A DNA stretch of 64,000 bases from Eutreptiella sp. 'Long Island Sound 2002' (Eukaryota; Protista; Euglenida). The translations under genes were made by a program, and so were the position numbers. Numbering within the stretch: the stretch's first letter is position 1; each line of letters starts with the position of its first letter. The notes beneath the pieces were generated by a model. The model was not told the DNA's origin and searched no databases. It worked only from the letters and a program-made list of their open reading frames with translations. The stretch covers positions 24,304,001 to 24,368,000 of the forward strand of contig OZ038379.1 of the NCBI GenBank assembly GCA_964036045.1, read 5' to 3'. This document shows, piece by piece, positions 25,750 to 51,239 of the stretch.

Positions 25750-26944
25750 CCCTATGGTAGCAGTAGGAGGACGGAACGACTGCCCAGAGGGGAAGAACCC
25801 AAAGCGCAAACGGGCCCAACCGAGCGGCCCCACGATAGGCATCGGGACACGGCAGCGACAAAGCCCCCGTGAATGGGAGCGGCGGTAAAGCGGCTCAGAA
25901 ACAGCGGGAAGGCCGACCGCGGAGCCCGGCAGCAGTCGGGCATGCGGAGAAGCGCGAGACGGCGACCGAGAGCGCCCTGCTCGCGACGATAGCGGAGCGG
26001 CAGGGCACCATACGAGACCTGCGGTTGGAGATAGCGGTCCTTCGGAAGCGCGAATCGGCGAAGGAGAAAGCGGCGCCGGCATCGTAGCGCCAGAGGGAGA
26101 CACGGCACGGCACCGGTGGCGACCGCGATGCCACACAGCCCACTCAGCTGGCACAGCCTATGACCGGGCCCAGTTATGCGTAGGTGGCACAAACGAGGGT
26201 GCGGACCAAGGTCCCGCGAGGAAGGAAGTACCGACGACAGGTATCCCACTCCAACTTGTGGCGGAAGAGCTCCAGAGGACGGCGGAGAAAGGGGAATAAG
26301 GCGCAGTCCTACCTGCCTGCCCGTACAGGGACAGGGACCTCGCAGACACCGGCATGGTGCAGCTAGCTCTGGTAGCGCCCCCGTCGCAGTGGCCCCCAAC
26401 ACTCAAAAAGGTGTTGCTGGTAGGCAAGAACACGGAGGACTTGTGGGCTGCAGCCTCGGAAGCGCCCACGACCCACAAAGGACTCCAGGAAATTGCGGCT
26501 ATCGTGAACGTGGGACAACCTGGTGCGGTGCCGGCCATCACAGGCCTGCTGAAACTGACAGGCTGGAGCCGAGACGACGTAGCCCTGACAGAGGCTGCCG
26601 GCGGAACTGCTGAGGGTGGCGGAACGCACGGGACGGTGGCCCGAACGAGTGGCGGAGGGCTTCACTTCATTGGTGCCCAAAGGGGAAGGGGAAGGCAACC
26701 CCATGAAGCTCAGACCGCTAACAGTGTTGTTGACGATATACAGGATCTGGCAGGGCTGCGGATGGAGGATGCCCTGCAATGGCAAGAGCAGTGGATCCAC
26801 CGGGAGTCATACGGCTTCAGGCCGCACAAGGGAGCCATGGATGCGGCCACGGTGACGCTGCTGGTGGAGCTGGCGCAAGTGCCGGACCCCCGCTGGTGGG
26901 GGCGGGAACAGATTATACCAAATGTTTCGACTTACTACCGCAGG
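25750..26944 (+). mobile_element. Internally deleted non-LTR retrotransposon (LINE copy A)
   Basis: Coiled-coil ORF1-like pieces, then RT N-terminal blocks GRWP...SLVPK...LRPLTVL...YRIW, YGFRP..GAMD and DYTKCFDLLPQ, then truncated. Confidence 0.8.
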
Positions 26945-29900
26945 GGGGCAGCTGGGCCTGCCCAGCCGCCCCCCCCCCCCCCCCACCGCCGAGCAAGCAA
27001 TGATCGCATTGGTACAACGCCAAATTGCGTCCCTCGAGGGCGTAATCAACAGCCTCCGCCGTGAGCTGGTGGCGTCAAGGGGCGAAGTAGCCCCAGCCCG
27101 GTCCCCGGCGACCACAGGGGCGCTGGCCGCGATGATGACGATTGCGACGACGACGAAAACAGCGGCGGCCGCCAAGAAAGCCGCCCCCACGACCCGGGCG
27201 GCGCCCGGCTGGCAGTTGGCGGGGGGGGGGGGACCCAGCAGGCGTCCCCGGAACGCCCAAGCACAACAAGCTGCGGCTTCGCCCCAGCGCTCCCCCCCCC
27301 CCCCCTCCCCAGTCTCCATGCGTGTGGACGGGGAAAGGTAGCGGCGAGCGGAGCTTGGAGCACCGCGATGGGTGCATTTGCCGGTCGGGTCATCTCCCCG
27401 CTCACCCCTTTTGCCTCTTGGCAGCCTGGTTGGGCGCACGAGGACATCAAAGTAGCCTGGGTCAACATCGTCCTCGAGGGGTTGGGGGGTGTCGAGGACG
27501 GCTCTGCCCCCCCCCCCCCCCCCCCACGGGCGAGCCTAGGCGGCGTGAGCTACACCTCGGCGACGCGGTTTGCGGCCCGGGGATCCCGACCGGGTGCGGT
27601 GCGGGTGGTGGTGACCGCTAGCCATGCTAAAGCAGCGCCTCGGCCTATATAGCCCACAGCGGCTGCCCTCTGGGCCCTCTTGCCTTCGATGACGGCGGTG
27701 CAGCCGCACCGCCTTTACCAGGGTGAGTCCCGGGACACGGTCCGGGCTTGGGGAATCACCCAAATCACGCCGGGGCGCCACCCGGCGGAGTGGAAACAAC
27801 CCTCCCAGGAGGGGGCCTTGCGGTGCGTGGCCCTGGGCCCGCCTTGCGGCCGCGGCCGCCATCGCGGCACATGACGGCGTCTAGCGAGTCACAGCGCCAA
27901 TGCACGTCCAAGGGGGCAGCAAAGCGGCCCCCACAGTGGCGACCTTGCTTCAGGCCCTGCCGCTCGAAGACCAGCCTCGCGGTGCCGGGCTCGTCCCTGC
28001 AAGGTGTGGTTTCGACCGAGCGCCAACCTGGGAGACAGCCAGCCCGGAGGTGGTGGACCCCGCTCCGCCGGGGCACGTACTGCAGCTCGTCTGGGAGCGT
28101 CTCCCGGAGGATGACAAGCGGGAGGCGGCCGAGCTCACAGATGTGGACCCCGTGCCGTTGTACCCCTGCCGTCCACGGTCCGGGTTGTCTGTGTCGTGGA
28201 CCCGGCAGTTCTGGCGGACGCCGACTTGCGCCGGCTCCATGTGGGTTCTTTCGGCAAGGACCACGCTTGGCGGCACATCAAGCCGCTAATGGGGGCGGAC
28301 TTGCCTCACCCCCCGCCCATGCAGTTGGCGGTCAGGGGGTCGATGGTCGAGGTCTCTGCCGACCTCCGGACAGAGGTGGCGCCGCTGGTTCTCCGCGCCA
28401 GTGGCAAAGCCCGGGGGGTCCACTTCCGGCTGTGGATAGTCACGGGCTCCGCCTGCCAACATCCCACGTATGTGTTGTGCTACAAGCAGCCACCGGAGCG
28501 CCGCATGCCCTCCCCGGAGGTCTGGATGACCTTCGCCGAGGATCAGGAGCACCGGACGCTATTCGCGGAATTCGTGGACGGGGGTGCCCCCGGCAACGCG
28601 GGGGTACACATTTGGGGGACCAAGCCGGCGAGCCCCGCGGTGGTGGCGCACATCGCCAGCCTACTGGGCGCGCTGGCCTGGTCACAGACGACCTCTGTGC
28701 GGGTTCGTGGCTACCCGCCACAACTGGGTCTGGCGGTGGATGAGTATGCGCAGCTCTGGCGCCACGCCGAAGAGGATTTTGGGTTGGAGGTGAACTTTCG
28801 CGTCCACCGCTGCACCCAGTTGGCCCACAACACCCACCACCGGCCGGTTTTTTGACCTGGAGCTGGAGGGGGTGCCTGAGGATTGGCAAGGAGTCCGGCT
28901 GGGGGCGCTCGACATCCGCCTGCCCGACCGCCTCCGGGAGCGGACAACCCGCAGCTCCCGCCGGGGGCACTACCAGCCCGTGGGCCCGAGGGCCCGAATT
29001 ACGCGCCCGGAGGGGTCGGGGGGCTACTGCGGTTGAGGCCCCGGACCACACGGGGGACCTGGCACCGCGGAGTCGGCGGCAGGCGACGTGGATGAGGACG
29101 ACGAGGACATTCTTCAATGTTCTTAGCCCTCTACATCCCGACCCTCTGCGTGTGTATGGCGGCTTGCCCGCGGTGGTTGACAGGGGCCCGAATGGAGACC
29201 CGCGGGGGAACGCCAGCGCGACTACGGCCCTTGGCCCCTTACCGGTCACGCCCGGGGTTGGTGGAGGTGTAATGGCGGCGGCTCCAGCACTGGCGCCCCC
29301 CCCTTGGGGCGGCGCTAGTGACCGGACTCCCTCCCCGGCAGTAGGGTGTCTATATGCCCATAGCCTAGGACGGCGCCCCGGGGCGAGGCGATGACCCTGA
29401 GTCCCCTCCGGGGGGGGGGGGGGGGGGGGCACCCGGGCGGTGGCAAGGGGCCCCACACCGGGGTGGGGCGGTGGTGGTATGGCAGGGGCACAACCGCCGC
29501 GGCACTGCGGCTGCCCCTCGCGCCGAGCGTGACCGGGAACGTGCCAAGGGGCTCCTCCGCTCCCCCCCCCCCCTTGGTTGGGATCGTGTCAGCACACCAG
29601 GTGGACAACGAGCGCTGCTTAACGTGCAAGCAACTGGAGTGGGATGTGCAACGCTTGTGGGCGGTAGCCTGCCCACGGAGACCAACGCAGGCGCCAGTGG
29701 CGCCTAGGCAAGAGGACGTGGAGAGGGCGGCACCATGAGCAGGCTCCCTGGCACCCCACCGGCTGCGCCTAGGGCTGGTTGTTAGTGGTAATGGCGGTGT
29801 TCCCAGCACTGGTGGACACCCCAATGGGACGGGCTCAGGAACCGGACCCTCTATGGGGCATGAGGGTGTCTATACGCCCACAGCCCACGAGGGCGCCCTG

Positions 29901-31458
29901 CGGCGAGGTGATGGCCTTGAGTCCCTCCTTGGGGGGGGGGGGGGGTCGCACCTGGGCGGTACCAAGGGCCCCACTTCAGGGTGTGGCCGGTGGCGGGATG
30001 GCACGGGACCCGGCCGCCGGAGCGCTGCGGCTATCCCTCACATTGGGCGTAGCTAGGGGCGTGTCAGGGAGCCCCCCCCCCCCCCCCCGGAAAGGGCAGT
30101 GGCCGCGGTCCGGGCCGACGGGGTGCACCGCCTAACCAGGGAATGGCTGGAAGGGAGCATGGGGCAGTTGGGTGCAACCCCCCACCACCATCCCCCCCCC
30201 CCCCCTGCCCCCTACACTGGCCACCCTGCGGCCCGCCACCGGTTTCTTTTGCCCATGGCACGGGGACCACGTGGTCGGGGCCGAGGGCGAGGGTGCAGGC
30301 ACCCCGGCCCGCCCTCCTCACTCCCCTGGAACTGGCGGCGGCACCACGGCTTCGCCCTGTTGCGGTGGTGGTACGGCCAGGCTGCCCGGGTGTTCCCCGC
30401 CCTCCACCAGCGACAAGGGTGGGCTAGCACCACCTGTGCCCTCGCCCCCCTTGAAGGGCTATGCCCTGGGGTCGTGCGCCTGTAGGACATCCTTGCCGGG
30501 GCGCGGACGGCCCCGTCTTCGCTGTCCGCCGTCCAGGGCCCCGCTGGCCCCGAGTTCGGGACCAAGGGGGCCATCGTTGGCCAGGCGCTGCAATGGAGGT
30601 ACCCTAGCGTCCTCTTTGCGCGCGCCCCCGCCCCGACGACTAGAGCGCCCGTCTTTTCTACACGTGGCGATGGTACTTGGCGCCACTGTGGCAGGACGTG
30701 ACAGGCGCGCCGATGTGGTGGCCAACCCGCAATGGCCGGGTGGAGCGTTGGTAGCCCCCCGACTGTTGGCACCTCCGCCCGCCCCGCCGCCTCACCCCCT
30801 TCCAAGGGGAGACGGCAGGCCCCATGCTGTGGCGGTGGATTGGTGGGGCCGGGTGTGGGACAATGACCCTGCCCGCCAGCCCCCCCCCCCCCCCGACCCT
30901 GACCCCTCGGCAACCTGGCAGGAGGTGGCCGCCGAGGTGCACGCCCTCCTCCCCCGGCTCACCGACGTCTGCTGGGCCGCCCTGCTGGAGCCGGGAGAGG
31001 TGTGGGCCACCTCCCAGTGGCCAAGCGTCCTCCGCCGCGTCCCCCCCGGCCCTCATTGGGACCTCTTGCACGAGGTTGCCCAAGAGGCCGATCGCCTCAC
31101 CGAGGGATGGGAGCACGGTCGCCCCCCGCGCACCCTACCCCCCCCCCCCCGCCTGTCGCCGGCAGACCGCCCCCTCCTCCCACGCCGCCCCCCGCCCCCC
31201 GCCTCCCGGCACGCCTACCTTGGGCCGGTGACCTCTGCCGCCTACCTGGCCTCGGTGCAGCGGGCTGGTCTAGCCCAGGAGCAACGGCTGACCTGCAGGC
31301 ATGCCATGCTGCCCTCCCTCTGACCCCTCCCCTCACGCCCTTTGGCCGCCGGCAGTTGAGTTTGTGGGTGGGCTGTGTACTCCCCCCCCCCCCCCGCTGG
31401 GGTGACCGTGGCTCTGCCCCCCCCCCCCTTGATAGGATGGCGATGGGACCCCCCCCCC

Positions 31459-31503
31459 CTCCTGCTGCTGCGTTGCGGTGGCGTACACCCCCACCCAGGG
31501 CCA
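31459..31503 (+). other. 2A/StopGo-like motif LLLLRCGGVHPHPGP directly upstream of APE
   Basis: Direct translation. Degenerate relative to the D(V/I)ExNPGP consensus; GGC is one base from GAC (Asp). Confidence 0.55.
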
Positions 31504-32280
31504 CTGCGCGTGGCGCAAGCCAATGTCACGTCCCTGCACATGCAGTGGCACACGGTCGCTGAGTGGCCAGCGGACGTGGTACTGCTCTCCAAGACCCGCC
31601 TCACGGTGGTCGCGTAGCAAGTGATGCGTGCCCAGGCCGCGGCCTTGGGGCGGCAAACTTTCTGGGGCGCCCCGGGGGCGGGGGGGGGGGGGGGGGGGGC
31701 ATCTGGGATGCGCCGGCCGGGGGGCTGGGGATCTTGGTGCGCCAGGGCATTCCCGCAAGACACGTCCTCCCCCCCAAAGGGGTGCCCCGGAGCGAGGCAG
31801 ACTCGCTCACCCCGGCCATGTGGCACTCTACCCGATGGTGCCAATTCCTGGTTGGCCTGGGGCGGGGATCGGAGTCTCTGCATGCCCAGGCGGCCTACAG
31901 CGTCTCCTCGCAGCCCGCCCTAAATCGGCCCTTCTAGGACCAAGCCACGTAGTACGTGGCGTGTCACGGGGCGGCCCCTGAGCTGTTCGGGGGGGGGGGG
32001 GGGACTTCGACGTTGACCGCCTGCTGCGCCCCCCCCCCCCCCATCCGTCCTGACGTCCCTCCCGGTCCAACGGCTGGTGGACGCGGATCTTGAGCTGGCG
32101 TCCGCCTTTGGGCGGGACCCCCTGTGCTCGTATCAGGGCCCGGAGGGTACGCGCCCCTCGCGCATCGATGGGATGCTGGTCGACACGCGGCTTGCGGCGC
32201 TGCTCCACGCAGCGGAACTGCTCCCGCGCGGGGCCATCCCGGGCCACACCCTGGTGCGATTCGACTTGCACCTGAAGGGT
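31504..32280 (+). pseudogene. Apurinic-like endonuclease (APE/EEP) domain of LINE B
   Basis: ANVTSL, VVLLS(K)TRL, GGLGILVR, GDFDV, SRIDGMLV and PGHTLVRF across frameshifts. Confidence 0.8.
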
Positions 32281-33230
32281 GCATCTCAGCGGGTGGTGAA
32301 GTTCATCCGCCCCAAGCCCGTTGAGGTGGCGCCGTGTGGGGAACGTGAGCAGCTCCTCCTCGTGCACCGCCTCCCCGACCCTCTGGAGGCCAGCTGGCGA
32401 GCGGCCCTATCCACGGGTGACGTGGACCAGGCCTGGGCCTTCGGGCCCACGGCCGGCAGAGGAAACCCTCCTCGCCCTCTCCTGCCCGGATATCGCCCCG
32501 GACTCCCTTCTGACCGGGGCCGCCTTGCCGCTGGCCCCACCGCACCTGCGCCGGGGCAGGGGGACCGACCAGCTGCTTCGTGAGGTGCGCATGTGCCCAA
32601 AGCAGCGCAGGGACAACGGGGGGCCGCTCACCTGCCCAGGTGGCTCCGGGAGGTCCACTGCTGCTTGGAGCGACTGGCGTACGGCGTGGGCGCCATACTG
32701 CGTAGGGTGCAACAGGCCTGGGCAGCGTTCCGGCGCTGCCTTGGCAAACTCCGCGCACTGGGCTCGGAGTATGCCGGCCTGGAACCGGGCGGCACACACC
32801 GGCTGGCCTCGCTGGAGTCGCTGCGCCGCTTCCGTACGGCGCTAGCTGGCAAGGTTCGGGCCACGCTGCGGGCAGAGGACGAGGGCCGGCTTCGCGAATG
32901 GCGCGCCTGGTTGGAGGAGGGCTGGACCTCCGACCATGGGGCAGTGTACCAGTGGCTCAAGGATGAGTCCTACGCCCCGCCGGTCACCTTCCTCTCCAGG
33001 CCGGATGGCACAGCCACGGCCGACTTGGCGGAAATGGATGGCCTCTTGCAGGATGCCTAGCGGCCAATAAACTGCAAGAATGCGGCAGACCCCGAGCCAG
33101 ATCCCACGGCCTTCCTCCGCCGGTATGGGCACCATGTTCGGCGAGTCCACATGATTGCCTCGCGGCTGGATGGCTCCCGCCTGCGCAAGGGGCTCTCCCG
33201 CATGAAGCCCTCGGCACTGGGACTGGACGG

Positions 33231-33626
33231 GTGGAGCCTGGCTCCCTCCCCGACATGCTGCTAGGTTGGCTGGCAGACCTCCTGCGTGAAGTGGAGCGCC
33301 TGGGCAGGTGGCCCGCCCGCCTGGCCAAGGGCTACACCGCCCTCATCCCCAAGGAGGGCCCGCCAGGACCCCTGAACACCCGCCCGCTCACGGTCCTGTC
33401 CATGGTCTACAGGCTGTGGGCGGGCGTGCGCCTGGCGGATGCCATCGCGTGGCAGGAGTCCTAGGCCCACCCAGCGGCCTTTGGCTTCTGCCCGGCCAGA
33501 AGCGCTCTGGACGGGGCGGCGGTGATGCAAGTCCTTTTGGAACTGTGTCGCCTCCGGGGGTGGGCAGTGGCGGGAATGACCATCAACTATGTCAAGTGTT
33601 TCCATCTCATGCCCCAGGCGGTCATA
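33231..33626 (+). pseudogene. RT N-terminal blocks of LINE B
   Basis: GRWP..LAKGYTALIPK..RPLTVLSMVYRLW, FGFCPARSA and NYVKCFHLMPQ. Confidence 0.88.
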
Positions 33627-35410
33627 TGGGTCAAATTGCCCAAAAATGCTCAAATACGTGTGTGGGGGGGCGGGGTCGATTGTTTCTTCATCCTTGGCGT
33701 TTTGGTCGGAAATCGCCCCCGAAAACGCTTCCGATATTTTTTCATCCCTAGGGATTTCGGCTCCCTCCCGGCTTCGGCCGGGGTTTCGGTCGGGGTTTCG
33801 GTCGGGGTTTCGGTCGGAAAAACGCTTCCGATATTTTCGCATCCCTAGGGATTCCAGGAGCGATTGCCTGGCATGTCGGCTGGAAAATTTACAGGTCGAT
33901 CGTCAGCAACGCTGGGAATCATGCCAAGATTTTCGGTCCCAAAATAAAAATTCTACGCTTTGCGTTTGAGCGACATGTGTTGTCAAAAAGTGAACCGAAA
34001 AAAGAATGAGCTTTGGCTCATTCCTTTGGCCGAACATGGAAATACAGCCTGGTATTTTGCAATTCTTCCGAAAGAATGAGCCATGGCTCATTATTTCGAC
34101 AAAACATCATTGGTCACGCCTACATAGCACATACACATGTACAAGTAATGTTGGGGAAACAGGGGCTTAACAAATACATGGGCAAAATCATGGAAACCGT
34201 TCAACAACATGCCATTTTGGAAGGGCAGAGCAAGGCAACGCATGGGAAGGTAGGGCATGGGATGGCAGGGCATGGCAGAGTAGGGCAATGAAGATGAGGC
34301 AGGCAGAGCAGGGAAGGCATGGTAGAGCAAGGTTGGCAGAGGGTGCAAGGCATGGTAGAGCAGAGCAGAGTAGGGCAAGGCATGGCTGAGCGGGGCAAGG
34401 CAGAGCGGGGCAGGAGGCCTATGCACATGGGGTTACATGATCCCAGGACGGTTCATCTCGTCCTAGCTTCCTGTAGGGTATGTGTCCGACACGACTATCC
34501 TCCTATATCGTCCTATAGAAGAAGGCCAACATGACTAGCACCAACATGACATCCTTGTACATGCATATGCGCTATGGCGGGGTTGAAAAGTAGTAGTTTT
34601 TCGAAAGAATTTGCCATGGCTCATTTTCTCAGAAGAACCAACAAATACCACGTGGTATTTCAAGGTTGCGTGAAAAGAATTAGCCATGGGTCATTCTTTT
34701 CGAAGAACTCCTGACTGCCATGCTGTAATTCTATGTTTGGACCAAAGAATGTGCCAGACAGACATCAAGATAAGGAGCCAAAGGATGACAGTGGTAAGGC
34801 GAAGCTGAGGGCTGGGGCGGCCCCCTTCTTGGGTTGCGTCAGGACTGTTGCTGGTAAAAAGTGAGTTGTACCGTGTGTGATTGTTGAATTTAAGCGTATT
34901 TATCTTCCGGTTCGGCTCGAAGAATGAGCCAAAACTCATTCTTTTTTCGGTTTACCGTTTTTAGCCTACCGTATACACGACGCGATACTGTATGGTTTAG
35001 TACTACTGTCATGTCGTATTGCTGCCATGTGTGCCCTGCATGCTGTGTTCTTCCACCCACATGTTTTGTAGATGTGCTGCTTGCTGAACAGCACACACAA
35101 TTATTGGCCAGGGTTTGTCATGTGTAGTAGTGGGGAAACAAGTTTGTGACAAATATGCCCCAAAACTCCTCGGAAAAGGTTTAAAAGCGTGCCATTCCGG
35201 CGTCTCATCTGCCTATTCTTGCACTGCCCCCCCTGCTCAACCCTCCCCGAAAAACACATTTCCCCTGTTTTTTCGGGGGTCCGGGACCCCCCCCCCCCCC
35301 CGAAGTACTGCAGCCAAGTCAAAATGCCCCCTTTTTTGTGGGTTTACAAAACCAGGTGTTTATGACACTTGCCAGAAAATGGGGCGGTCGGTCAGGGCCG
35401 CCCCATGCCC
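33627..35410. mobile_element. ~1.8-kb lower-GC non-coding insert interrupting LINE B RT
   Basis: Abrupt composition change between RT block 3 and block 4. Contains internal direct repeats, (GGGGTTTCGGTC)3 and five hairpin motifs. No clean TSD or TIR found. Confidence 0.55.
34223..34414. repeat. Degenerate pentamer simple repeat (GGCAN/AGGCA)
   Basis: Runs of GGCAG, GGCAT, GGCAA and GAGCA. Confidence 0.8.
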
Positions 35411-44750: not shown

Positions 44751-47200
44751 TGAGGGCACGCACTTCCCACTACACTCTGCCCTTTCTATTTCTGCTGGGT
44801 TGCTCCCAGTTGCCCTCATTTGTTCACCGCGCATGCACCGCATCCCGTGCCTCTCCAATCATGACGACTGACCAATGCCAGTGAACAGTAGTGGGGAGGG
44901 AGCCAGCCTCATCACTTGACAACTCCTGACGCATTGCCCCACATCTCACGTTACTGAACCAGCGGGGTTGACGGTATTTCATGTTCAGTTTCACGTGTCA
45001 CCCTTGAGCGCGTGTGAATGAATGTGTGTGCGCAGAAGTGATACATTACGGATTGCGGCACCATTTGTATGCATCACGTGTGGTAAGGAGTAGGAGTCGG
45101 CTACACCACATCGTCTACTGTATCCCTCTATATTCTTTTCTAACCTCTACCCCGATATTCAAGTCATTTTCGGTGTGGTCAGAGTCGTGCGATGCATAAA
45201 CGTCCCCAGGGCTTGTTCGGTGCAAACCGACAAGAAGCTATCAAATCTCAATGTGGGTTTGCCCCCCCTTGTCAGTGCATTCAGCCCGGGGTTCGCTGCT
45301 TCTCGTTTGCCCTGATCCCACCTGCTCTCTCCTCAAATGTTGTGGCGGTGAAAACCGTTTCCAAACACAAACCAAACAGCGCCTTCGCATCCCTAGAACC
45401 TTCTGTGTCCCATTGGTTGGCTAATTGTTACTCTATGAAATGCAACACCATGGTTGCTGTTGCATAAAATCAGGGTGGGGTAGCAGTGCTCTGCGAGATT
45501 CCTGGTGGCAGTGCATGCAGTGCACCCTGTCGTGCCGTAACGGCACATTGACCAAGGTGCTGCTGCTCTGAGGATTGCTGTCAGTTTGAATTGACTTCCT
45601 GCAGTGTGACAAAACCCGTGGCTGTATACACCTTTGTGGTGATGGTTGAATTTTCGGCTAGAATCATCACCCTTGGGCAAGATGGGGTGGGAGTCGGCCG
45701 AGCCTGGGGTAAGGTGACCAAGGAAACTGACCCCCCCCCCCCCCCAGTCAGCGCACGAGGTTGGCACTGCCATGGAACCGGTTTCTGGAACTTTGTGCGT
45801 CACCCTACCCCTGCACCACACGCGCTCTTTATACCTACCAATTTTACCTACCAATATACCTACCAAAGATCTCCATTGCTGCCCAAACAACTCTTTTAGG
45901 TGTTGTTGCTGCCAATTTCGAAGCATTCCATCATTGACTGGAATCGAGACAGCGGTGTTGGTTGCGTTGTGGGCTGATACATTACCCAGGATGAGAATTG
46001 GCACATAGAGCTGGAGAGGGTAGAAGGGTGGTTGCTCTTCATCTTTTCACAGAACACCACAAAATTGGGACAAGGGACAATTGGAGTGGTGATGGCAGTG
46101 TTACCAAACCCCTCGCGGACATCGACCTTTTCCAGCTCAGTATTGATTTCTCTTTGAGGTATGGCTTTCTCTGTGCATGGCACAGCGCTGTTTTACTCAC
46201 CCTTCAGTCTTTCTTGTGCCCCAGTAGCACATTGGGATGCCTATGGGCGATCAGATTCAGCTTATCCTCACTACCTGTTCTGTCCGCTACCACATTGCTT
46301 TGTGGTACAATCGTAGCATGGGACAACTCTCCGAGAGATTTCTGAAGTGCCTTGTGGTGAGCGGACTTCACCAGCTTGCCATGGCCTGGACCCCCCCCCC
46401 CCAAAAGAATGCATTACCTAGGAGGAGAATTTTGGTTGCGTTGGATGTGTGTTTGTCTGTTTACAATCTGTGCCAGCCCGCAGAGGCAGCGCTCGCTGCT
46501 GCGAACATTGGAAAAGATGTGTACCATACCGGCGCGCGTGTTTTCCCTGCATGCACCTGGAGCGATTGGAGGCATGGGGAGGGATTGACCGAGGAGAATT
46601 GTGGCATGCATCATGTGACATTGGGGGAACGTTAGCGCGCCGGGCACACGCCGGGCATCTTTTGTGACCCATGCCCCACCCGTGGCCTTCTAGGGGGTGC
46701 ACTAAGGGGGCGCACTTAGCGCAGCTAGCTGTGTTACTTACGTCTAATGGCCCGTATCATGTTCCGGTAGACATATATAATTCTACTTAAGTCTAGCGGA
46801 ATAAGTGTTACGCGTAGCGGAATATTATCACCAGACCGAATTTAACATTACAATGTTCCGCTAGACGCATCGCAACGTACATCTTACATATGTGTCTTCA
46901 TGCGATAATTGAACAAACCTAGGAGCTTGCAAGAACTCTGGCAAAGTATTTTTTTCACTACTTCTTCTGGTTGTGGGGCCGAAGTGTTGAAGTGCCAAAA
47001 GGCCGACTGTCGGCATTGCTTTCCTGTTGTCCGTCATTCACACCCCATATCATAGTGAGTGCGCTAGCGTGTGCAGCTATTTGGGCGTCTGGCTGTACTA
47101 GAGACCCATACTTTGAGATACTAGGTGACCCCTAGAGTAGGTTTTGACTTCTGATTTTGTCCCCTTTGTTGGGGGCCCCTGAGAATGCACGGGTGACGTA

Positions 47201-47858
47201 CCCCCCCCCCCCTTGTCGTTCCCCACCCCTTGTTGTTACCTAGGGGGGGGGGTGGGGGACTGTCACTTGGTCAACCCAAAATTTTTCGTTGCGGCTCATT
47301 GTGTTGTTGTGTGGGTGACTGTGTTGTGGGGCACTGCCACTTGTATCCCTTGCACTCATGGCAGGACATTTTGCTTACTTTCGCTGAAATGGAACTTGAT
47401 AGCACAACCATGTTTCCCCCTGGGACAATTGTGACGGATGATGATAGTGACCTGAATTCTGACACGGAGGTTGTGTGGGTGAAGAGTGCCCGTGGTATAT
47501 GGGGTATGGGACACAGTTTTGGGAACAAGTTGTATTTCACAAGGGACATTCCCGAAGGGAAATGGGTTCCCAAAAATCTGCTTGCGCTTGCCAAGCCTCC
47601 TACCAAGAAGGCAAAACCACTACCCAAGGGTGCTGTCCAAAGCATTCCAGTGGAAAGTGGAGAGCATGTGCAAGATTTCAAGGTGAAGTGGAGCAGGACC
47701 AAGAAATTTTCCGCCGAGCCCGTCAAGGAGTAGGTCTCCGTACATTGGCAGCCCTTTGAACGTATCTTATGCTGAATTCTTTACGGTGGTAGTGCGGTCC
47801 CCCAGGGGGTGGTGGGGGACCGTCTTCCCTGGGGTGGGGAATGACAAGGGGGGGGGGG
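47201..47858 (+). mobile_element. TA-flanked TIR element nested in element 1
   Basis: TA|C12-TTGTCGTTCCCCACCCC...GGGGTGGGGAATGACAA-G11|TA; ~29-bp TIR with one mismatch. Confidence 0.88.
47410..47733 (+). CDS. Small ORF of ARG(I/V)WG...RDIPE...GEHVQxF family, carried by the TA element
   Basis: Homologous to 61789-62150 and partly to 58310-58567. GEHVQ at 47659, 58460 and 62053. Confidence 0.55.
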   Translation: MFPPGTIVTDDDSDLNSDTEVVWVKSARGIWGMGHSFGNKLYFTRDIPEGKWVPKNLLALAKPPTKKAKPLPKGAVQSIPVESGEHVQDFKVKWSRTKKFSAEPVKE

Positions 47859-47925
47859 TAGCATTTCCGCCCTCTTTTGGGCCCCAACCTTCCGGTGCTA
47901 TTGAGGAAACCTGGGACAATCTCTG

Positions 47926-48070
47926 AATCCACGCTTTGTTGCGTGGCCCCTTGAGTTGGGGTTAGGGGGTTGCAATCCACGCTTTGTTGCGTGGCCCCTC
48001 GAGTCGGGGTTAGGGACTCGCAATCCACGCTTTTTTGCGTGGCCCCTCGAGTTGGGGTTAGGGACTCACA
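47926..48070 (+). repeat. 48-bp tandem repeat x3 containing GGGGTTAGGG
   Basis: Units start at 47926, 47974 and 48022 (AATCCACGCTTTGTTGCGTGGCCCC...). Confidence 0.95.
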
Positions 48071-48697
48071 ATTGCTTTATTATGCAACGTGCTTTGTAGG
48101 GAAGGTGTGCAGTGTAACGTGGTCTACTTGGGGGGCTTCTCCATGAGAGGGTGAATCCCGGGCTGAAGTCGGGATACTTAATAGAAAAGTAGCGCGCCGG
48201 GGGCGCGCCGGGCAGAATTCCCCCATTGGTGCCACACTGAACGGTAACGCAAGTCCTTCCTCAGTGGCAGGGGAATGGTGTCAACAAGGGATTGCGGGAT
48301 GCGCAATTTGTCATCAGATCCTCTAGGGACGTAGAATGAAGCCACTGCTGGGCTAGGTCAGCCCAGGGGCCGCAAATGCGTACCCAATCGTGCATAAACA
48401 CCTAGCGCTAGGCAGCACAGTGGATAAGGGGAGCGTGCGGCGTGCTGGAGTGTTTGCCAAAACAGACCGCGCACTGGATCTTTGTCTTCTCCCATGGAGG
48501 AGAGCATCTGTGCCACGGGACATTGCCCCACAGCCATTGGAGCCATGCTTGGTGGCGTTGTGCACATAGGGGGAGCCTCAAGCGCAGTGCGCGCGCAGTG
48601 CAACTATTTGGGCGTCTCGCCGTACTAGAGACCCATACTTAGAGATACTAGGGGCCCCTAGGGGCATCATGGTGACCCCTAGCGGAGGTTTTGCAAG

Positions 48698-49433
48698 GGG
48701 GGTGTTGCCTGAACCGTGCGCGCACGGTGCGCGCACCGTGCGTCCTTTTGCGTATTCTGTGTCCACCAGATCCACAATGCCTGAATCTAAGCTGCCCTGG
48801 CTTGTCGCCGGACTGCTTGTGTACTACCACCGCTCCAACGGGGATAGGGTGTCGGCCACTGTCGTTGACCCTTCTCCAAGAGGTGGGCGTCGTGTCTCTA
48901 TTCGGTACGAATTGGGTGGTGAAGAGCGGTTGGAGCGGTTGGAGTTTGCAATTGTGACTGCTGAGAGCCCCGATTCCCCCCAACCTGTGCACCATGAGGC
49001 GCCGATGGACGCTTTGCTGGAGCCCCAATTACCTGAAGTGGAAGCTGAAGCCCCTAGAATTGATGATCATGAGCTAGAAGCCCCCCGCCTGTGTTGTCGC
49101 GTGTGCATGGTTTGTTACGGAGGTGCGTGCAAAGTGCAGAAATTGGGAGCCTGGAACCTGTGACAAGCATCAGATTCAAAAAGAAAGTTCCCGGTACGCC
49201 AATAGGGGCTGCAGGGTGCATAAAATAGGACCCTGGAACCTGTGCCAAGCATGAGACTAAAAATTGAAGAATCTTGGTATGCCAGTATGGACTGCAAGGT
49301 GCAAAAATCAGGACCCTGGGTGTGTTTCTATGGGGGCCATTCAACGGGGTACAAGTTGGGCAACCATCCCAAAAACATTGAACCGTGCGCGCACCGTGCA
49401 CGCACCGTGCGCGCACCGTGCGACAACGCCCCC
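48698..49433 (+). mobile_element. Non-autonomous TIR element 4, nested in element 3
   Basis: AAG|GGGGGTGTTG...CAACGCCCCC|AAG. ACCGTGCGCGC repeats at both ends. Confidence 0.82.
48777..49163 (+). CDS. Tudor/SH3-barrel-like domain + acidic linker + Cys cluster
   Basis: GLLVYYHRSNGDRVSATVVDPSPRGG..VSIRYE...CCRVCMVC. Confidence 0.5.
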   Translation: MPESKLPWLVAGLLVYYHRSNGDRVSATVVDPSPRGGRRVSIRYELGGEERLERLEFAIVTAESPDSPQPVHHEAPMDALLEPQLPEVEAEAPRIDDHELEAPRLCCRVCMVCYGGACKVQKLGAWNL

Positions 49434-49593
49434 AAGGTGTAGCACGTTTGGGTCAAGGCATGGCAAGGCGTAGCATGGTTGTGTCAAGGCATGGTAAGGC
49501 GCAATGCTCGTGTGCACACATTGATCTATCGTGCTTGCACATATGCTACAAGACTTCATACCCCCCTCCTCCTTTCTTAGAAACACTTTCTTC

Positions 49594-49761
49594 ATGGATT
49601 TGAGTCTTGGCGATCGGGTGTTCTACACCCGCTCCAACGGCGTGCGAGTTCCTGCCACGGTGGTAGGGATGGCGGGAGATGGGCTCATCCACTTGGAGTA
49701 CTACCAAGATGCACTACGGGTGGTAAATCGCCAATGCAAGATGGAGTCCATGTGTACTTAG
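49594..49761 (+). CDS. Tudor/SH3-barrel-like domain fragment
   Basis: GDRVFYTRSNGVRVPATVVGMAGDGLIHLEYY; a paralog of 48777. Confidence 0.5.
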   Translation: MDLSLGDRVFYTRSNGVRVPATVVGMAGDGLIHLEYYQDALRVVNRQCKMESMCT

Positions 49762-49984
49762 TAGACAATGGAACAGAAAGACAGTTGTGTGTTCTTGAGG
49801 GTGGCGACCAATGCGCTGTTCATGGCTTTTCCAATTGTGCATGGGGGAATGTTTGCCCGGCGCGCGCCCGGCGCGCTACTTTTAGACTATGTTCCCCCCG
49901 AAGAGCCCCCAAGCACACCCCTTGGAAACGCCCTTAGAATTAGGTGACCCAAACTGCCCCAGTTCAAGAAAGTTGCAAACCGGG

Positions 49985-50130
49985 GTACACAGTACCACTC
50001 TCGCTCCTTTAAGGGCGATCTTGGTCAACACCTTAGCAAGTTGGGAGAATGGGGGGTTAGGATAGCACAACCGCATCGATCTCCAGTAGAAGCGATAGGC
50101 GTTATTGAGGTATCGCGAACAGTAGAGGTG
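49985..50130 (-). pseudogene. N6-adenine DNA methyltransferase fragment (DIRS-associated Dam-like motif IV)
   Basis: NAYRFYW...CYPNPPFSQLAKVLTKI...ARVVLCTP; NPPF at 50047-50058. Confidence 0.75.
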
Positions 50131-50149
50131 CATCATAACATTGGTCCCA

Positions 50150-50243
50150 CAAATGTGGGTGTCAATACATTCAGTACAATAGTGCTCCTTACACTCATCA
50201 CAAACTGCGACGGTGGAGCACTTCTGGCAACACAACACACACA
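50150..50243 (-). pseudogene. B-box-like zinc finger fragment
   Basis: C-x2-C-x5-C-x2-C-x4-C-x2-C-x3-H (CQKC..CDEC..CTECIDTH). Confidence 0.55.
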
Positions 50244-50266
50244 CTTCTGCCTCATCCTCTGCCTCA

Positions 50267-50575
50267 TCTTGCGTGCCACAACCGAGCAAACAGCTGCTCA
50301 ATGCGTGCCCTATACCACCCGTGCAAGTCATTGTAACATTGTTGGTGGGCTATCAAAGTGCCATTCTTTCTTCCAATGAATGGCACAATGACATGAATCC
50401 GCCCCTTATAAGCACCATCATGGCCCCCAACTTCGAAATCAAAGAAATCACCTCGGGTATGACAAGGTCCATACCCATCCCAAATCAAAACATCTGCTGA
50501 TGTCCCGGGGGCCAAGGGGCAAATCCATATAATGTTGCCCAACATATCAACGGCAACAGTCCACCGGTAGGGCAC
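50267..50575 (-). pseudogene. PIF/Harbinger/ISL2EU-type (DDE_Tnp_4, HARBI1-like) transposase fragment
   Basis: VAVDMLGNI..PGTSAD..DGAY (50408-50419)..IVPF..YNDLHGWYRARIEQLF. Confidence 0.85.
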
Positions 50576-51239
50576 GGGTCACAAAAGATGCCCGGCGCGC
50601 GCCCGGCGCGCTAACGATCCCCCCATGATGTGTGTTATGTGAAGGGAAGGTAGTTTGCAACTTTCTTGAGCTAGGGCAGTTTGGGTCACCTAATTCTAAG
50701 GGCGTTTCGAAGGGGTTTGCTTGGGGGCTCTTCGGGGGGAACATAGTCTAAAAGTAGCACGCAGTGCAGCGCGCAGTGCGCGCGCAGTGCAAAGATTCCC
50801 CCATAGTGGGATCCACGTGGCTCAGTGCACCGCGCCTGATCAAGAACAGCGCCCTGTGACCCAGTACGCCATGCACTATGTTGCCCGCGCCCACCGCATG
50901 TGGAACGCTGCCCGACAGGACCTGGCAGCTGGTATCTGGGCTCACTGTCACTTCACCACGGGAGCACATCGGATGACCCAATGGTTCAAGAAAGTTCTCA
51001 CCGCATGGCACACCACCAAGCTAGGCATGTGTTTGTGGTTCCAACACTCCGTCCCCATATGGCCTTGGTCCTAAGTGAACAGTTTGCAGCCTCCTTGCTG
51101 TGTCTCCACTCCTACGCACACTCATACCTCCCCACACTGTCCCTGCATATGCAGCTCTATGTGGTCTCGTGCATGGGAGGTCCTTGAGCCAAGGGCCTAG
51201 TCAAAGGCCTTTGGTTGGTTTGCTGCCTTCAAGGAGCGG

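Follow-up and report, generated by a model that had tools for sequence, protein, structure and literature searches.

The 781-bp unit described here is an ordinary chimera, in which two internally deleted remnants of one transposase are joined to a DAM-like methylase piece and a 115-nt module. It lies in the window, by which we mean the whole stretch of 64,000 nucleotides of DNA that was analysed. Our analysis suggests that the unit is very probably a non-autonomous, MITE-like element of the PIF/Harbinger type that combines transposase remnants with a scrap of a retroelement DAM domain, and that would have been assembled stepwise, moved in trans, amplified and left inert. The features and their coordinates are given in Table 1. 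In the following, P-numbers denote public proteins, L-numbers denote loci of the same genome, and G000 denotes genome positions.

Table 1. Features of the 781-bp unit and of the two related elements beside it in the window.
Feature	Position	Strand	Basis or remark
Whole non-autonomous Harbinger-type element	49843..50623	minus	781 bp; genomic copies match the exact span, 95-99% identity
Target-site duplication, 5' side, ATG (minus-strand reading)	50624..50626	minus	sequence reading and script
5' terminus: GGGGGATCGTT, two 11-nt GCGCGCCGGGC, leader to ...CCGGTGG	50563..50623	minus	repeat analysis
Transposase remnant, DDE_Tnp_4-like	50273..50560	minus	Pfam, tblastn, P0061 alignment
Internal deletion junction ...LWH / TQDE...	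50256..50284	minus	~57 transposase residues gone, frame shifted
Acidic DEAEDEAE linker and Cys-rich B-box-like finger, cut after ...CGTNV	50137..50274	minus	HMMER, BLASTP E=3e-23
52-residue retroelement DAM-like piece (MMHLYCSRYLNNAYRFYWRSMRLCYPNPPFSQLAKVLTKIALKGARVVLCTP), motif IV only	49981..50136	minus	71-81% identity to retroelement DAM
149-aa open frame	49882..50331	minus	ORF list; out-of-frame DDE DNA, finger, DAM piece and 3' module
115-nt 3' subterminal module, non-coding	49866..49980	minus	inverted match to outer-element end 50653-50767, 94% complementary
3' terminus: two 11-nt repeats and ...AAACATTCCCCC	49843..49878	minus	repeat analysis, alignment of copy ends
Target-site duplication, 3' side, ATG (minus-strand reading)	49840..49842	minus	sequence reading and script
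Outer G5...C5 element	48569-50802		TSD ATA; different 11-mer (GCAGTGCGCGC)
Sister element	46623-48224		TSD ATT; termini as in the 781-bp unit (first ~60 nt, last ~45 nt)

The span of 49843-50623, which had been proposed from the letters of the sequence alone, proved to be exact, and the copy matches, the termini and the target-site duplications (TSDs) mark it as a real mobile-element unit. On the minus strand the element begins with GGGGGATCGTT at 50623 and finishes with AACATTCCCCC at 49843; the tips have the form GGGGG...CCCCC, and 11-base subterminal repeats stand next to them. The 5' leader of ~60 nt is common to sister elements, one copy of it being found at 46623-46682 with divergent sequence beyond. 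We searched the window's own assembly (2.28 Gb in 2,317 contigs) for copies at the DNA level and sampled 42 distinct ones, in 38 of which both termini were found. A perfect 3-bp TSD flanks 34 of these 38 copies, and the duplicated sequences are varied and A/T-leaning. The sampled copies range from 741 to 804 bp in length, which is largely accounted for by differing numbers of the 11-nt GCGCGCCGGGC repeats beside each tip, while two of the shortest sampled copies have internal deletions in addition.

The unit resembles the Tourist-like MITEs of PIF/Harbinger in its DDE_Tnp_4-type remnant, its 3-bp TSD and its short terminal inverted repeats, as well as in its internal deletions and in being one of hundreds to thousands of near-identical copies. 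It differs from them in its targets: PIF/Harbinger elements usually insert at TWA (TAA/TTA), whereas TAA makes up only 3 of the 34 TSDs and TTA none of them, so that no TWA preference is seen. It also differs in the organization of its ends, where 11-nt GC-rich repeats, oriented alike at the two ends, come after the G5/C5 tips, and in its parental transposase, which has a C-terminal Cys-rich finger. The features expected of a non-autonomous deletion derivative are all found, i.e. an incomplete transposase, termini common to transposase-bearing relatives, and many near-identical copies. The sister element at 46623-48224 has both termini, and a relative at L018 has the 3' terminus together with other parts of the same transposase. 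Because the N-terminus of the transposase, its first catalytic Asp and all of the DAM domain except motif IV are absent, we would expect the unit to move only in trans, through the transposase of relatives that have the GGGGGAAYGTT tip and the 11-nt GCGCGCCGGGC repeats, and its frames to be relics.

The unit is a nested insertion in the outer element at 48569-50802, and the stretch to its right (50624-50802) lies outside the unit and forms the end of this outer, related element. A single element at 49841-50804 with 150-nt inverted arms was considered and rejected, as its left arm is the end of the outer element. Because the outer element and its insert have only the 115-nt subterminal module in common, in inverted orientation, the families seem to exchange modules. 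The outer element also holds small Tudor/SH3-like frames, e.g. 49531-49761 on the plus strand. A TA-flanked element whose tips are poly-C/poly-G interrupts the sister element at about 47204-47860; three ~55-nt tandem repeats lie within the latter at about 47930-48070. Elsewhere in the window, a block at 26000-34000 has a G+C content of 66-72% against a window background of ~52%. A search of the whole window against Rfam gave no match.

The Harbinger assignment of the DDE fragment, as made in the sequence-only reading, was borne out by tblastn against those transposases in the same genome which score above the Pfam cut-off (25-30% identity, best E=5.5e-7). The match of the remnant to Pfam DDE_Tnp_4 (PF13359) has an E-value of 3.3e-4 and 20.8 bits, below the cut-off of 24.8 bits, and covers profile positions 34-127 only. 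The remnant is 85% identical to the public protein P0061 (E=5e-45). Homology to DDE_Tnp_4-type transposases is supported by these alignments. By the usual motifs of Harbinger transposases, PGTSAD in the remnant would mark the second catalytic Asp region and RARIEQLF the Glu motif; the N-terminus and the first Asp are lacking.

The parents of the remnant are hidden from a direct search. Protein searches of the own genome with both fragments returned only near-identical 781-bp copies, and the distant parents were reached by querying with the stretch missing from the unit and with public proteins. In the alignment with P0061, residues 158-214 of that protein are absent from the unit; the deleted stretch is retained at L057 (about 1250-2328) and at L018 (2316-2976). 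The 29-mer across the deletion junction has 1,670 matches in the genome with at most 2 mismatches, while its control has 0. At L058-L072 we found other Harbinger-type families, with intact transposase frames of 290-375 aa that end in ...LCNIQNM..C..VPY.PYT and have no Cys-rich finger. Some of these families have a second long frame after the transposase (432 aa at L060, position 1945; 481 aa at L061), which might be a helper gene.

The Cys-rich finger next to the remnant has the spacing C-x2-C-x9-C-x2-C-x4-C-x2-C-x3-H-x-C. We searched 1.84 billion representative proteins with HMMER, using a 97-residue query of the finger plus the NPPF piece, and obtained 192 matches. These matches form two classes with a common border at query residue 45/46, immediately past ...CGTNV. 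In the first class, which covers the acidic stretch and the finger, the matched segment is always the extreme C-terminus of the protein: P0061, P0014, P0019, P0027 and P0020 end in ...CGTNVVC or ...CGSNVVC, and P0012 ends in ...CGTNVFC. The locus L018 has a stop codon right after ...CGTNVFC. In P0061, the DDE half, ~57 residues (RGLVRNIWRGGPNE...LLHFTQFCIRRQ...WTDQS.SAA), the acidic stretch and the finger follow each other in one frame. This protein is 100% identical to G000 C6:96807838, and over 100 genomic relatives span its residues 86-262 stop-free, in frames of up to 760 aa. Long frames among the relatives lie at G000 C24:33172519 (760 aa), C14:36069663 (673 aa) and C17:30363986 (629 aa). 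Other Harbinger families of the same genome are without the Cys-rich tail. These alignments show that transposases of this clade natively have the finger as their C-terminal tail.

The label "B-box" that had been given to the finger could not be confirmed, as only the Cys/His spacing fits. Neither the 46-residue tail nor P0061 matches any Pfam family at E<=10, the B-box family PF00643 included, and against PDB sequences the finger has only non-significant matches (PHD, FYVE-like and TRIM28; E 0.1-2). The likeness to B-box zinc fingers lies in the spacing, which resembles B-box 1 and makes two zinc sites plausible; the difference lies in the missing profile match and in PDB matches that are mixed and non-significant.

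The nativeness of the finger bears directly on the number of sources. The earlier proposal of sequential capture from three sources corresponds to independent captures of a transposase, a B-box gene and a methylase gene, and the unit does show three protein-like segments one after another, separated by two breaks in frame or sequence. We nevertheless regard this as extremely unlikely: the DDE half and the finger form one frame in P0061 and in its more than 100 genomic relatives, and the break between them in the unit is a simple internal deletion, the missing stretch being preserved in L018 and L057. By these comparisons the three-capture reading is refuted for the finger and would hold only for the DAM piece. 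Since the finger is native to the transposase (P0061, P0014, P0019, P0027 and P0020), the 781-bp chimera has two sources and not three.

The second class of HMMER matches covers the NPPF segment only, at places internal to other proteins. The NPPF piece carries motif IV (D/N-P-P-Y/F) as NPPF at residues 92-95 of the open reading frame, where it aligns with NPPFS of retroelement DAM domains. Its match to Pfam Dam (PF05869) is weak (E=0.012-0.028, 14.5-15.8 bits, against a cut-off of 28.1 bits) and corresponds to positions 30-79 of the 169 in the profile. The matches to public proteins are much closer: the piece is 71% identical to P0015 (E=7e-26), 81% to P0017, 81% to P0009 and 69% to P0022. 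All four proteins extend on both sides of it, through ...LQVDLNEVQVELFASKEQH and through ...DWG..GE..YW..LLD, and these extensions are missing in the 781-bp unit. The piece likewise lacks the ELFAS start and the PDW...YW continuation found in retroelement DAM domains, and it falls short of a complete DAM domain able to bind cofactor and DNA. The retroelement family concerned is large. P0015 is 99% identical to G000 C3:152017499, and its relatives, for which a first look at the genome gave 17,812 candidates, have frames that reach 1,595 aa, e.g. at C7:85818170.

The NPPF context had been ascribed to the Dam-like domain of DIRS-type retroelements. An element of the DIRS type would have a tyrosine recombinase and neither a protease nor an integrase. 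The DAM-like retroelement part of this ascription holds, at the 71-81% identity of Table 1, but the source looks LTR-type rather than DIRS-type, because an aspartyl protease is found upstream of DAM in relatives of the piece (by Pfam in P0149, and by alignment in P0044, P0143 and P0083) and because an integrase zinc finger is found in L073, which belongs to a more distant DAM family. The locus L073 (G000 C8:59949500-59958500) has an intact retroelement frame of 1,768 aa on the minus strand (L073:316-5622), which contains a DAM-like domain at 489-558, a reverse transcriptase at 749-931, an RNase H at 1041-1189 and the integrase zinc finger at 1538-1599. Upstream of this frame is a second, gag-like one that contains a CCHC knuckle. 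DIRS1-type elements have the order RT-RH-MT; in L073, unlike in these, the DAM domain precedes the reverse transcriptase. L073 itself was ruled out as the source of the NPPF piece, with an identity of 33% over 39 residues and a more distant DAM family.

Several further searches with this part of the unit found little. A tblastn search of the window and of all 73 loci, with the DAM piece as query, found copies of its own family and no other relatives. In a PDB sequence search, a profile built from the DAM region of the retroelements gave nothing at E<=1, and the finger plus DAM stretch had no usable match in the ESM Atlas.

An attractive possibility was that the unit derives by deletion from an autonomous Harbinger-like element with an adenine methylase of its own, either fused to the transposase or beside it. 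The finger and the NPPF piece are indeed in one frame in about 940 copies, and in relatives the transposase runs on into the finger. However, the independent finger proteins that we read (P0061, P0014, P0019, P0027, P0020 and P0012) stop 1-2 residues past ...CGTNV, and L018 likewise has its stop after the finger. All proteins matched across the finger/DAM junction are short (60-153 aa), and the four that were read are chimeric fragments and not transposases. Retroelement pol sequences with a protease upstream match the DAM piece at 71-81% identity, and in a sister family the deletion junction recurs together with the native end. With the transposase protein stopping after the finger and the relatives of the DAM piece lying in retroelement pol, an autonomous Harbinger element encoding an adenine methylase is not supported, and we hold it to be highly improbable.

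The order of the parts on the minus strand is as first described, with the DDE fragment first, after which the Cys-rich finger and the NPPF piece share a single frame, the 149-aa ORF. The chimera is amplified in the genome, as the 29-mer across the finger/methylase junction occurs 943 times with at most 2 mismatches (control 0). Simple capture had been expected to leave a methylase piece that maps to an unrelated retroelement in a chimera unique to this locus; the piece does map to a retroelement, but the chimera, with this number of junctions, is not unique. Among them, 20 exact matches form a small sub-group, which includes the window copy and in which His replaces the ancestral Gln at MMQLYCS. 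The four junction-spanning proteins read (P0001, P0003, P0005 and P0008) are chimeras of the MITE type or of the P0005 type described below. We also observed, at G000 C11:68231699-68241495, five finger plus DAM copies spaced about 2,383 bp apart, in a tandem array that contains the element. Separately, the right flank of the copy at L008 (G000 C5, near 65254190) carries CTTTCTGAGTGTGTATTTTTTTTCGG, one mismatch away from the Euglena spliced-leader. The exact 24-nt spliced-leader sequence of Euglena gracilis has 3,309 matches in the assembly, dispersed over both strands, and its control has 0. This count speaks for a Euglena genome, at the level of the genus only.

The 149-aa frame is most likely not a gene. 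Across the 43 copies sampled for this purpose, diversity is ~2.3% throughout. In the finger-DAM frame it is 0.018, 0.023 and 0.021 at codon positions 1, 2 and 3, and in the DDE frame 0.017, 0.029 and 0.027, with no excess at the third position in either; this test of selection is a rough one, the copies being the best-scoring ones and not a random sample. The coding fragments look like neutral relics, given that no codon-position bias is seen among the copies. No methylase should be obtainable from motif IV alone, and we infer that the coding fragments are inert.

One could still imagine that the frame is expressed as a functional small protein, for instance an interfering factor that acts on the transposase or on retroelements with a DAM domain. 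Most copies do keep the frame open (155-156 aa are stop-free in most of 150 matches), and the finger retains all eight zinc ligands. But the copies are only about 2% diverged, and open frames are then expected by chance. The third codon position shows no excess, the frame begins in out-of-phase DDE DNA and finishes in translated terminal-repeat DNA, and everything of DAM but motif IV is missing from the piece. We consider such a protein very unlikely. A broader version of the same thought, in which a modular "Pack-Harbinger" system exchanges its ends and takes up cargo and a finger-DAM protein of ~150 aa is made from about a thousand loci, interfering with the transposase or with DAM retroelements, seems to us very improbable too.

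The neutral, trans-mobilised chimera that we favour could have formed in three steps. In the first, internal deletions would have produced a DDE-finger derivative with the native end, similar to P0014, which shares the unit's deletion junction and keeps the native VVC end; a further 7-nt deletion in P0014 is indicated by its protein sequence. In the second step, the 3' part would have been replaced, through recombination or template switching, by that of an older small element of the P0005 type, a donor that would already have held a longer DAM piece beside the same 3' module. In the third step, the product would have spread to roughly a thousand copies. Going by the counts and the protein-level relatives, deletions, 3' exchange and amplification would be the simplest order.

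The P0005/P0048-type family, with an element at C25:15336008 for example, has a longer DAM piece, which starts at VDLNEV, and an identical 3' junction (LCTP/VCNF) into the 115-nt module. Its copies are only 81-90% identical to the representative P0005 at the protein level, and this suggests a family older than the 781-bp unit. An element of the P0005 type fits as the donor because it combines the same 3' junction, a longer DAM piece and more diverged copies. Alternatively, a retroelement could have contributed the DAM piece to the finger junction without an older carrier element in between, e.g. by a nested insertion followed by a deletion. Elements often insert into one another, three nested or adjacent members being present in the window, and retroelement DAM copies are very abundant. 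This route appears unlikely against a P0005-type family in which the LCTP/VCNF junction and the 115-nt module are identical, the DAM piece reaches further in the 5' direction and the copies are more diverged.

Two groups of known elements invite comparison with the chimera. With Pack-MULEs and Pack-CACTA elements it has in common a foreign coding piece that lies between transposon ends, is co-amplified with them and is in frame with neighbouring sequence. It differs from them in that the cargo is a scrap of retroelement pol and not of a host gene, and in that the carrier is of the Harbinger type. The second group comprises the DAM-carrying LTR and DIRS elements described in Euglena gracilis (preprint 10.64898/2026.05.21.726589). 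The 52-residue piece belongs to the same DAM-like family (ELFAS...NPPFS...PDW...YW) as theirs. In contrast to these elements, the 781-bp unit has only motif IV and its flanks, inside a DNA transposon, and it has no reverse transcriptase, integrase or recombinase.

These results remove an attractive lead, as nothing in them points to an adenine methylase encoded by a DNA transposon. For annotation, they mean that DAM-domain or B-box matches of ~50 residues in this genome are not to be counted as genes. The unit is a clean, datable example of how a defective Harbinger-type element is assembled, by internal deletion and by module exchange with other elements. For the transposases themselves, our data support a conserved Cys-rich C-terminal finger in this clade, which the other Harbinger families of the genome do not have.
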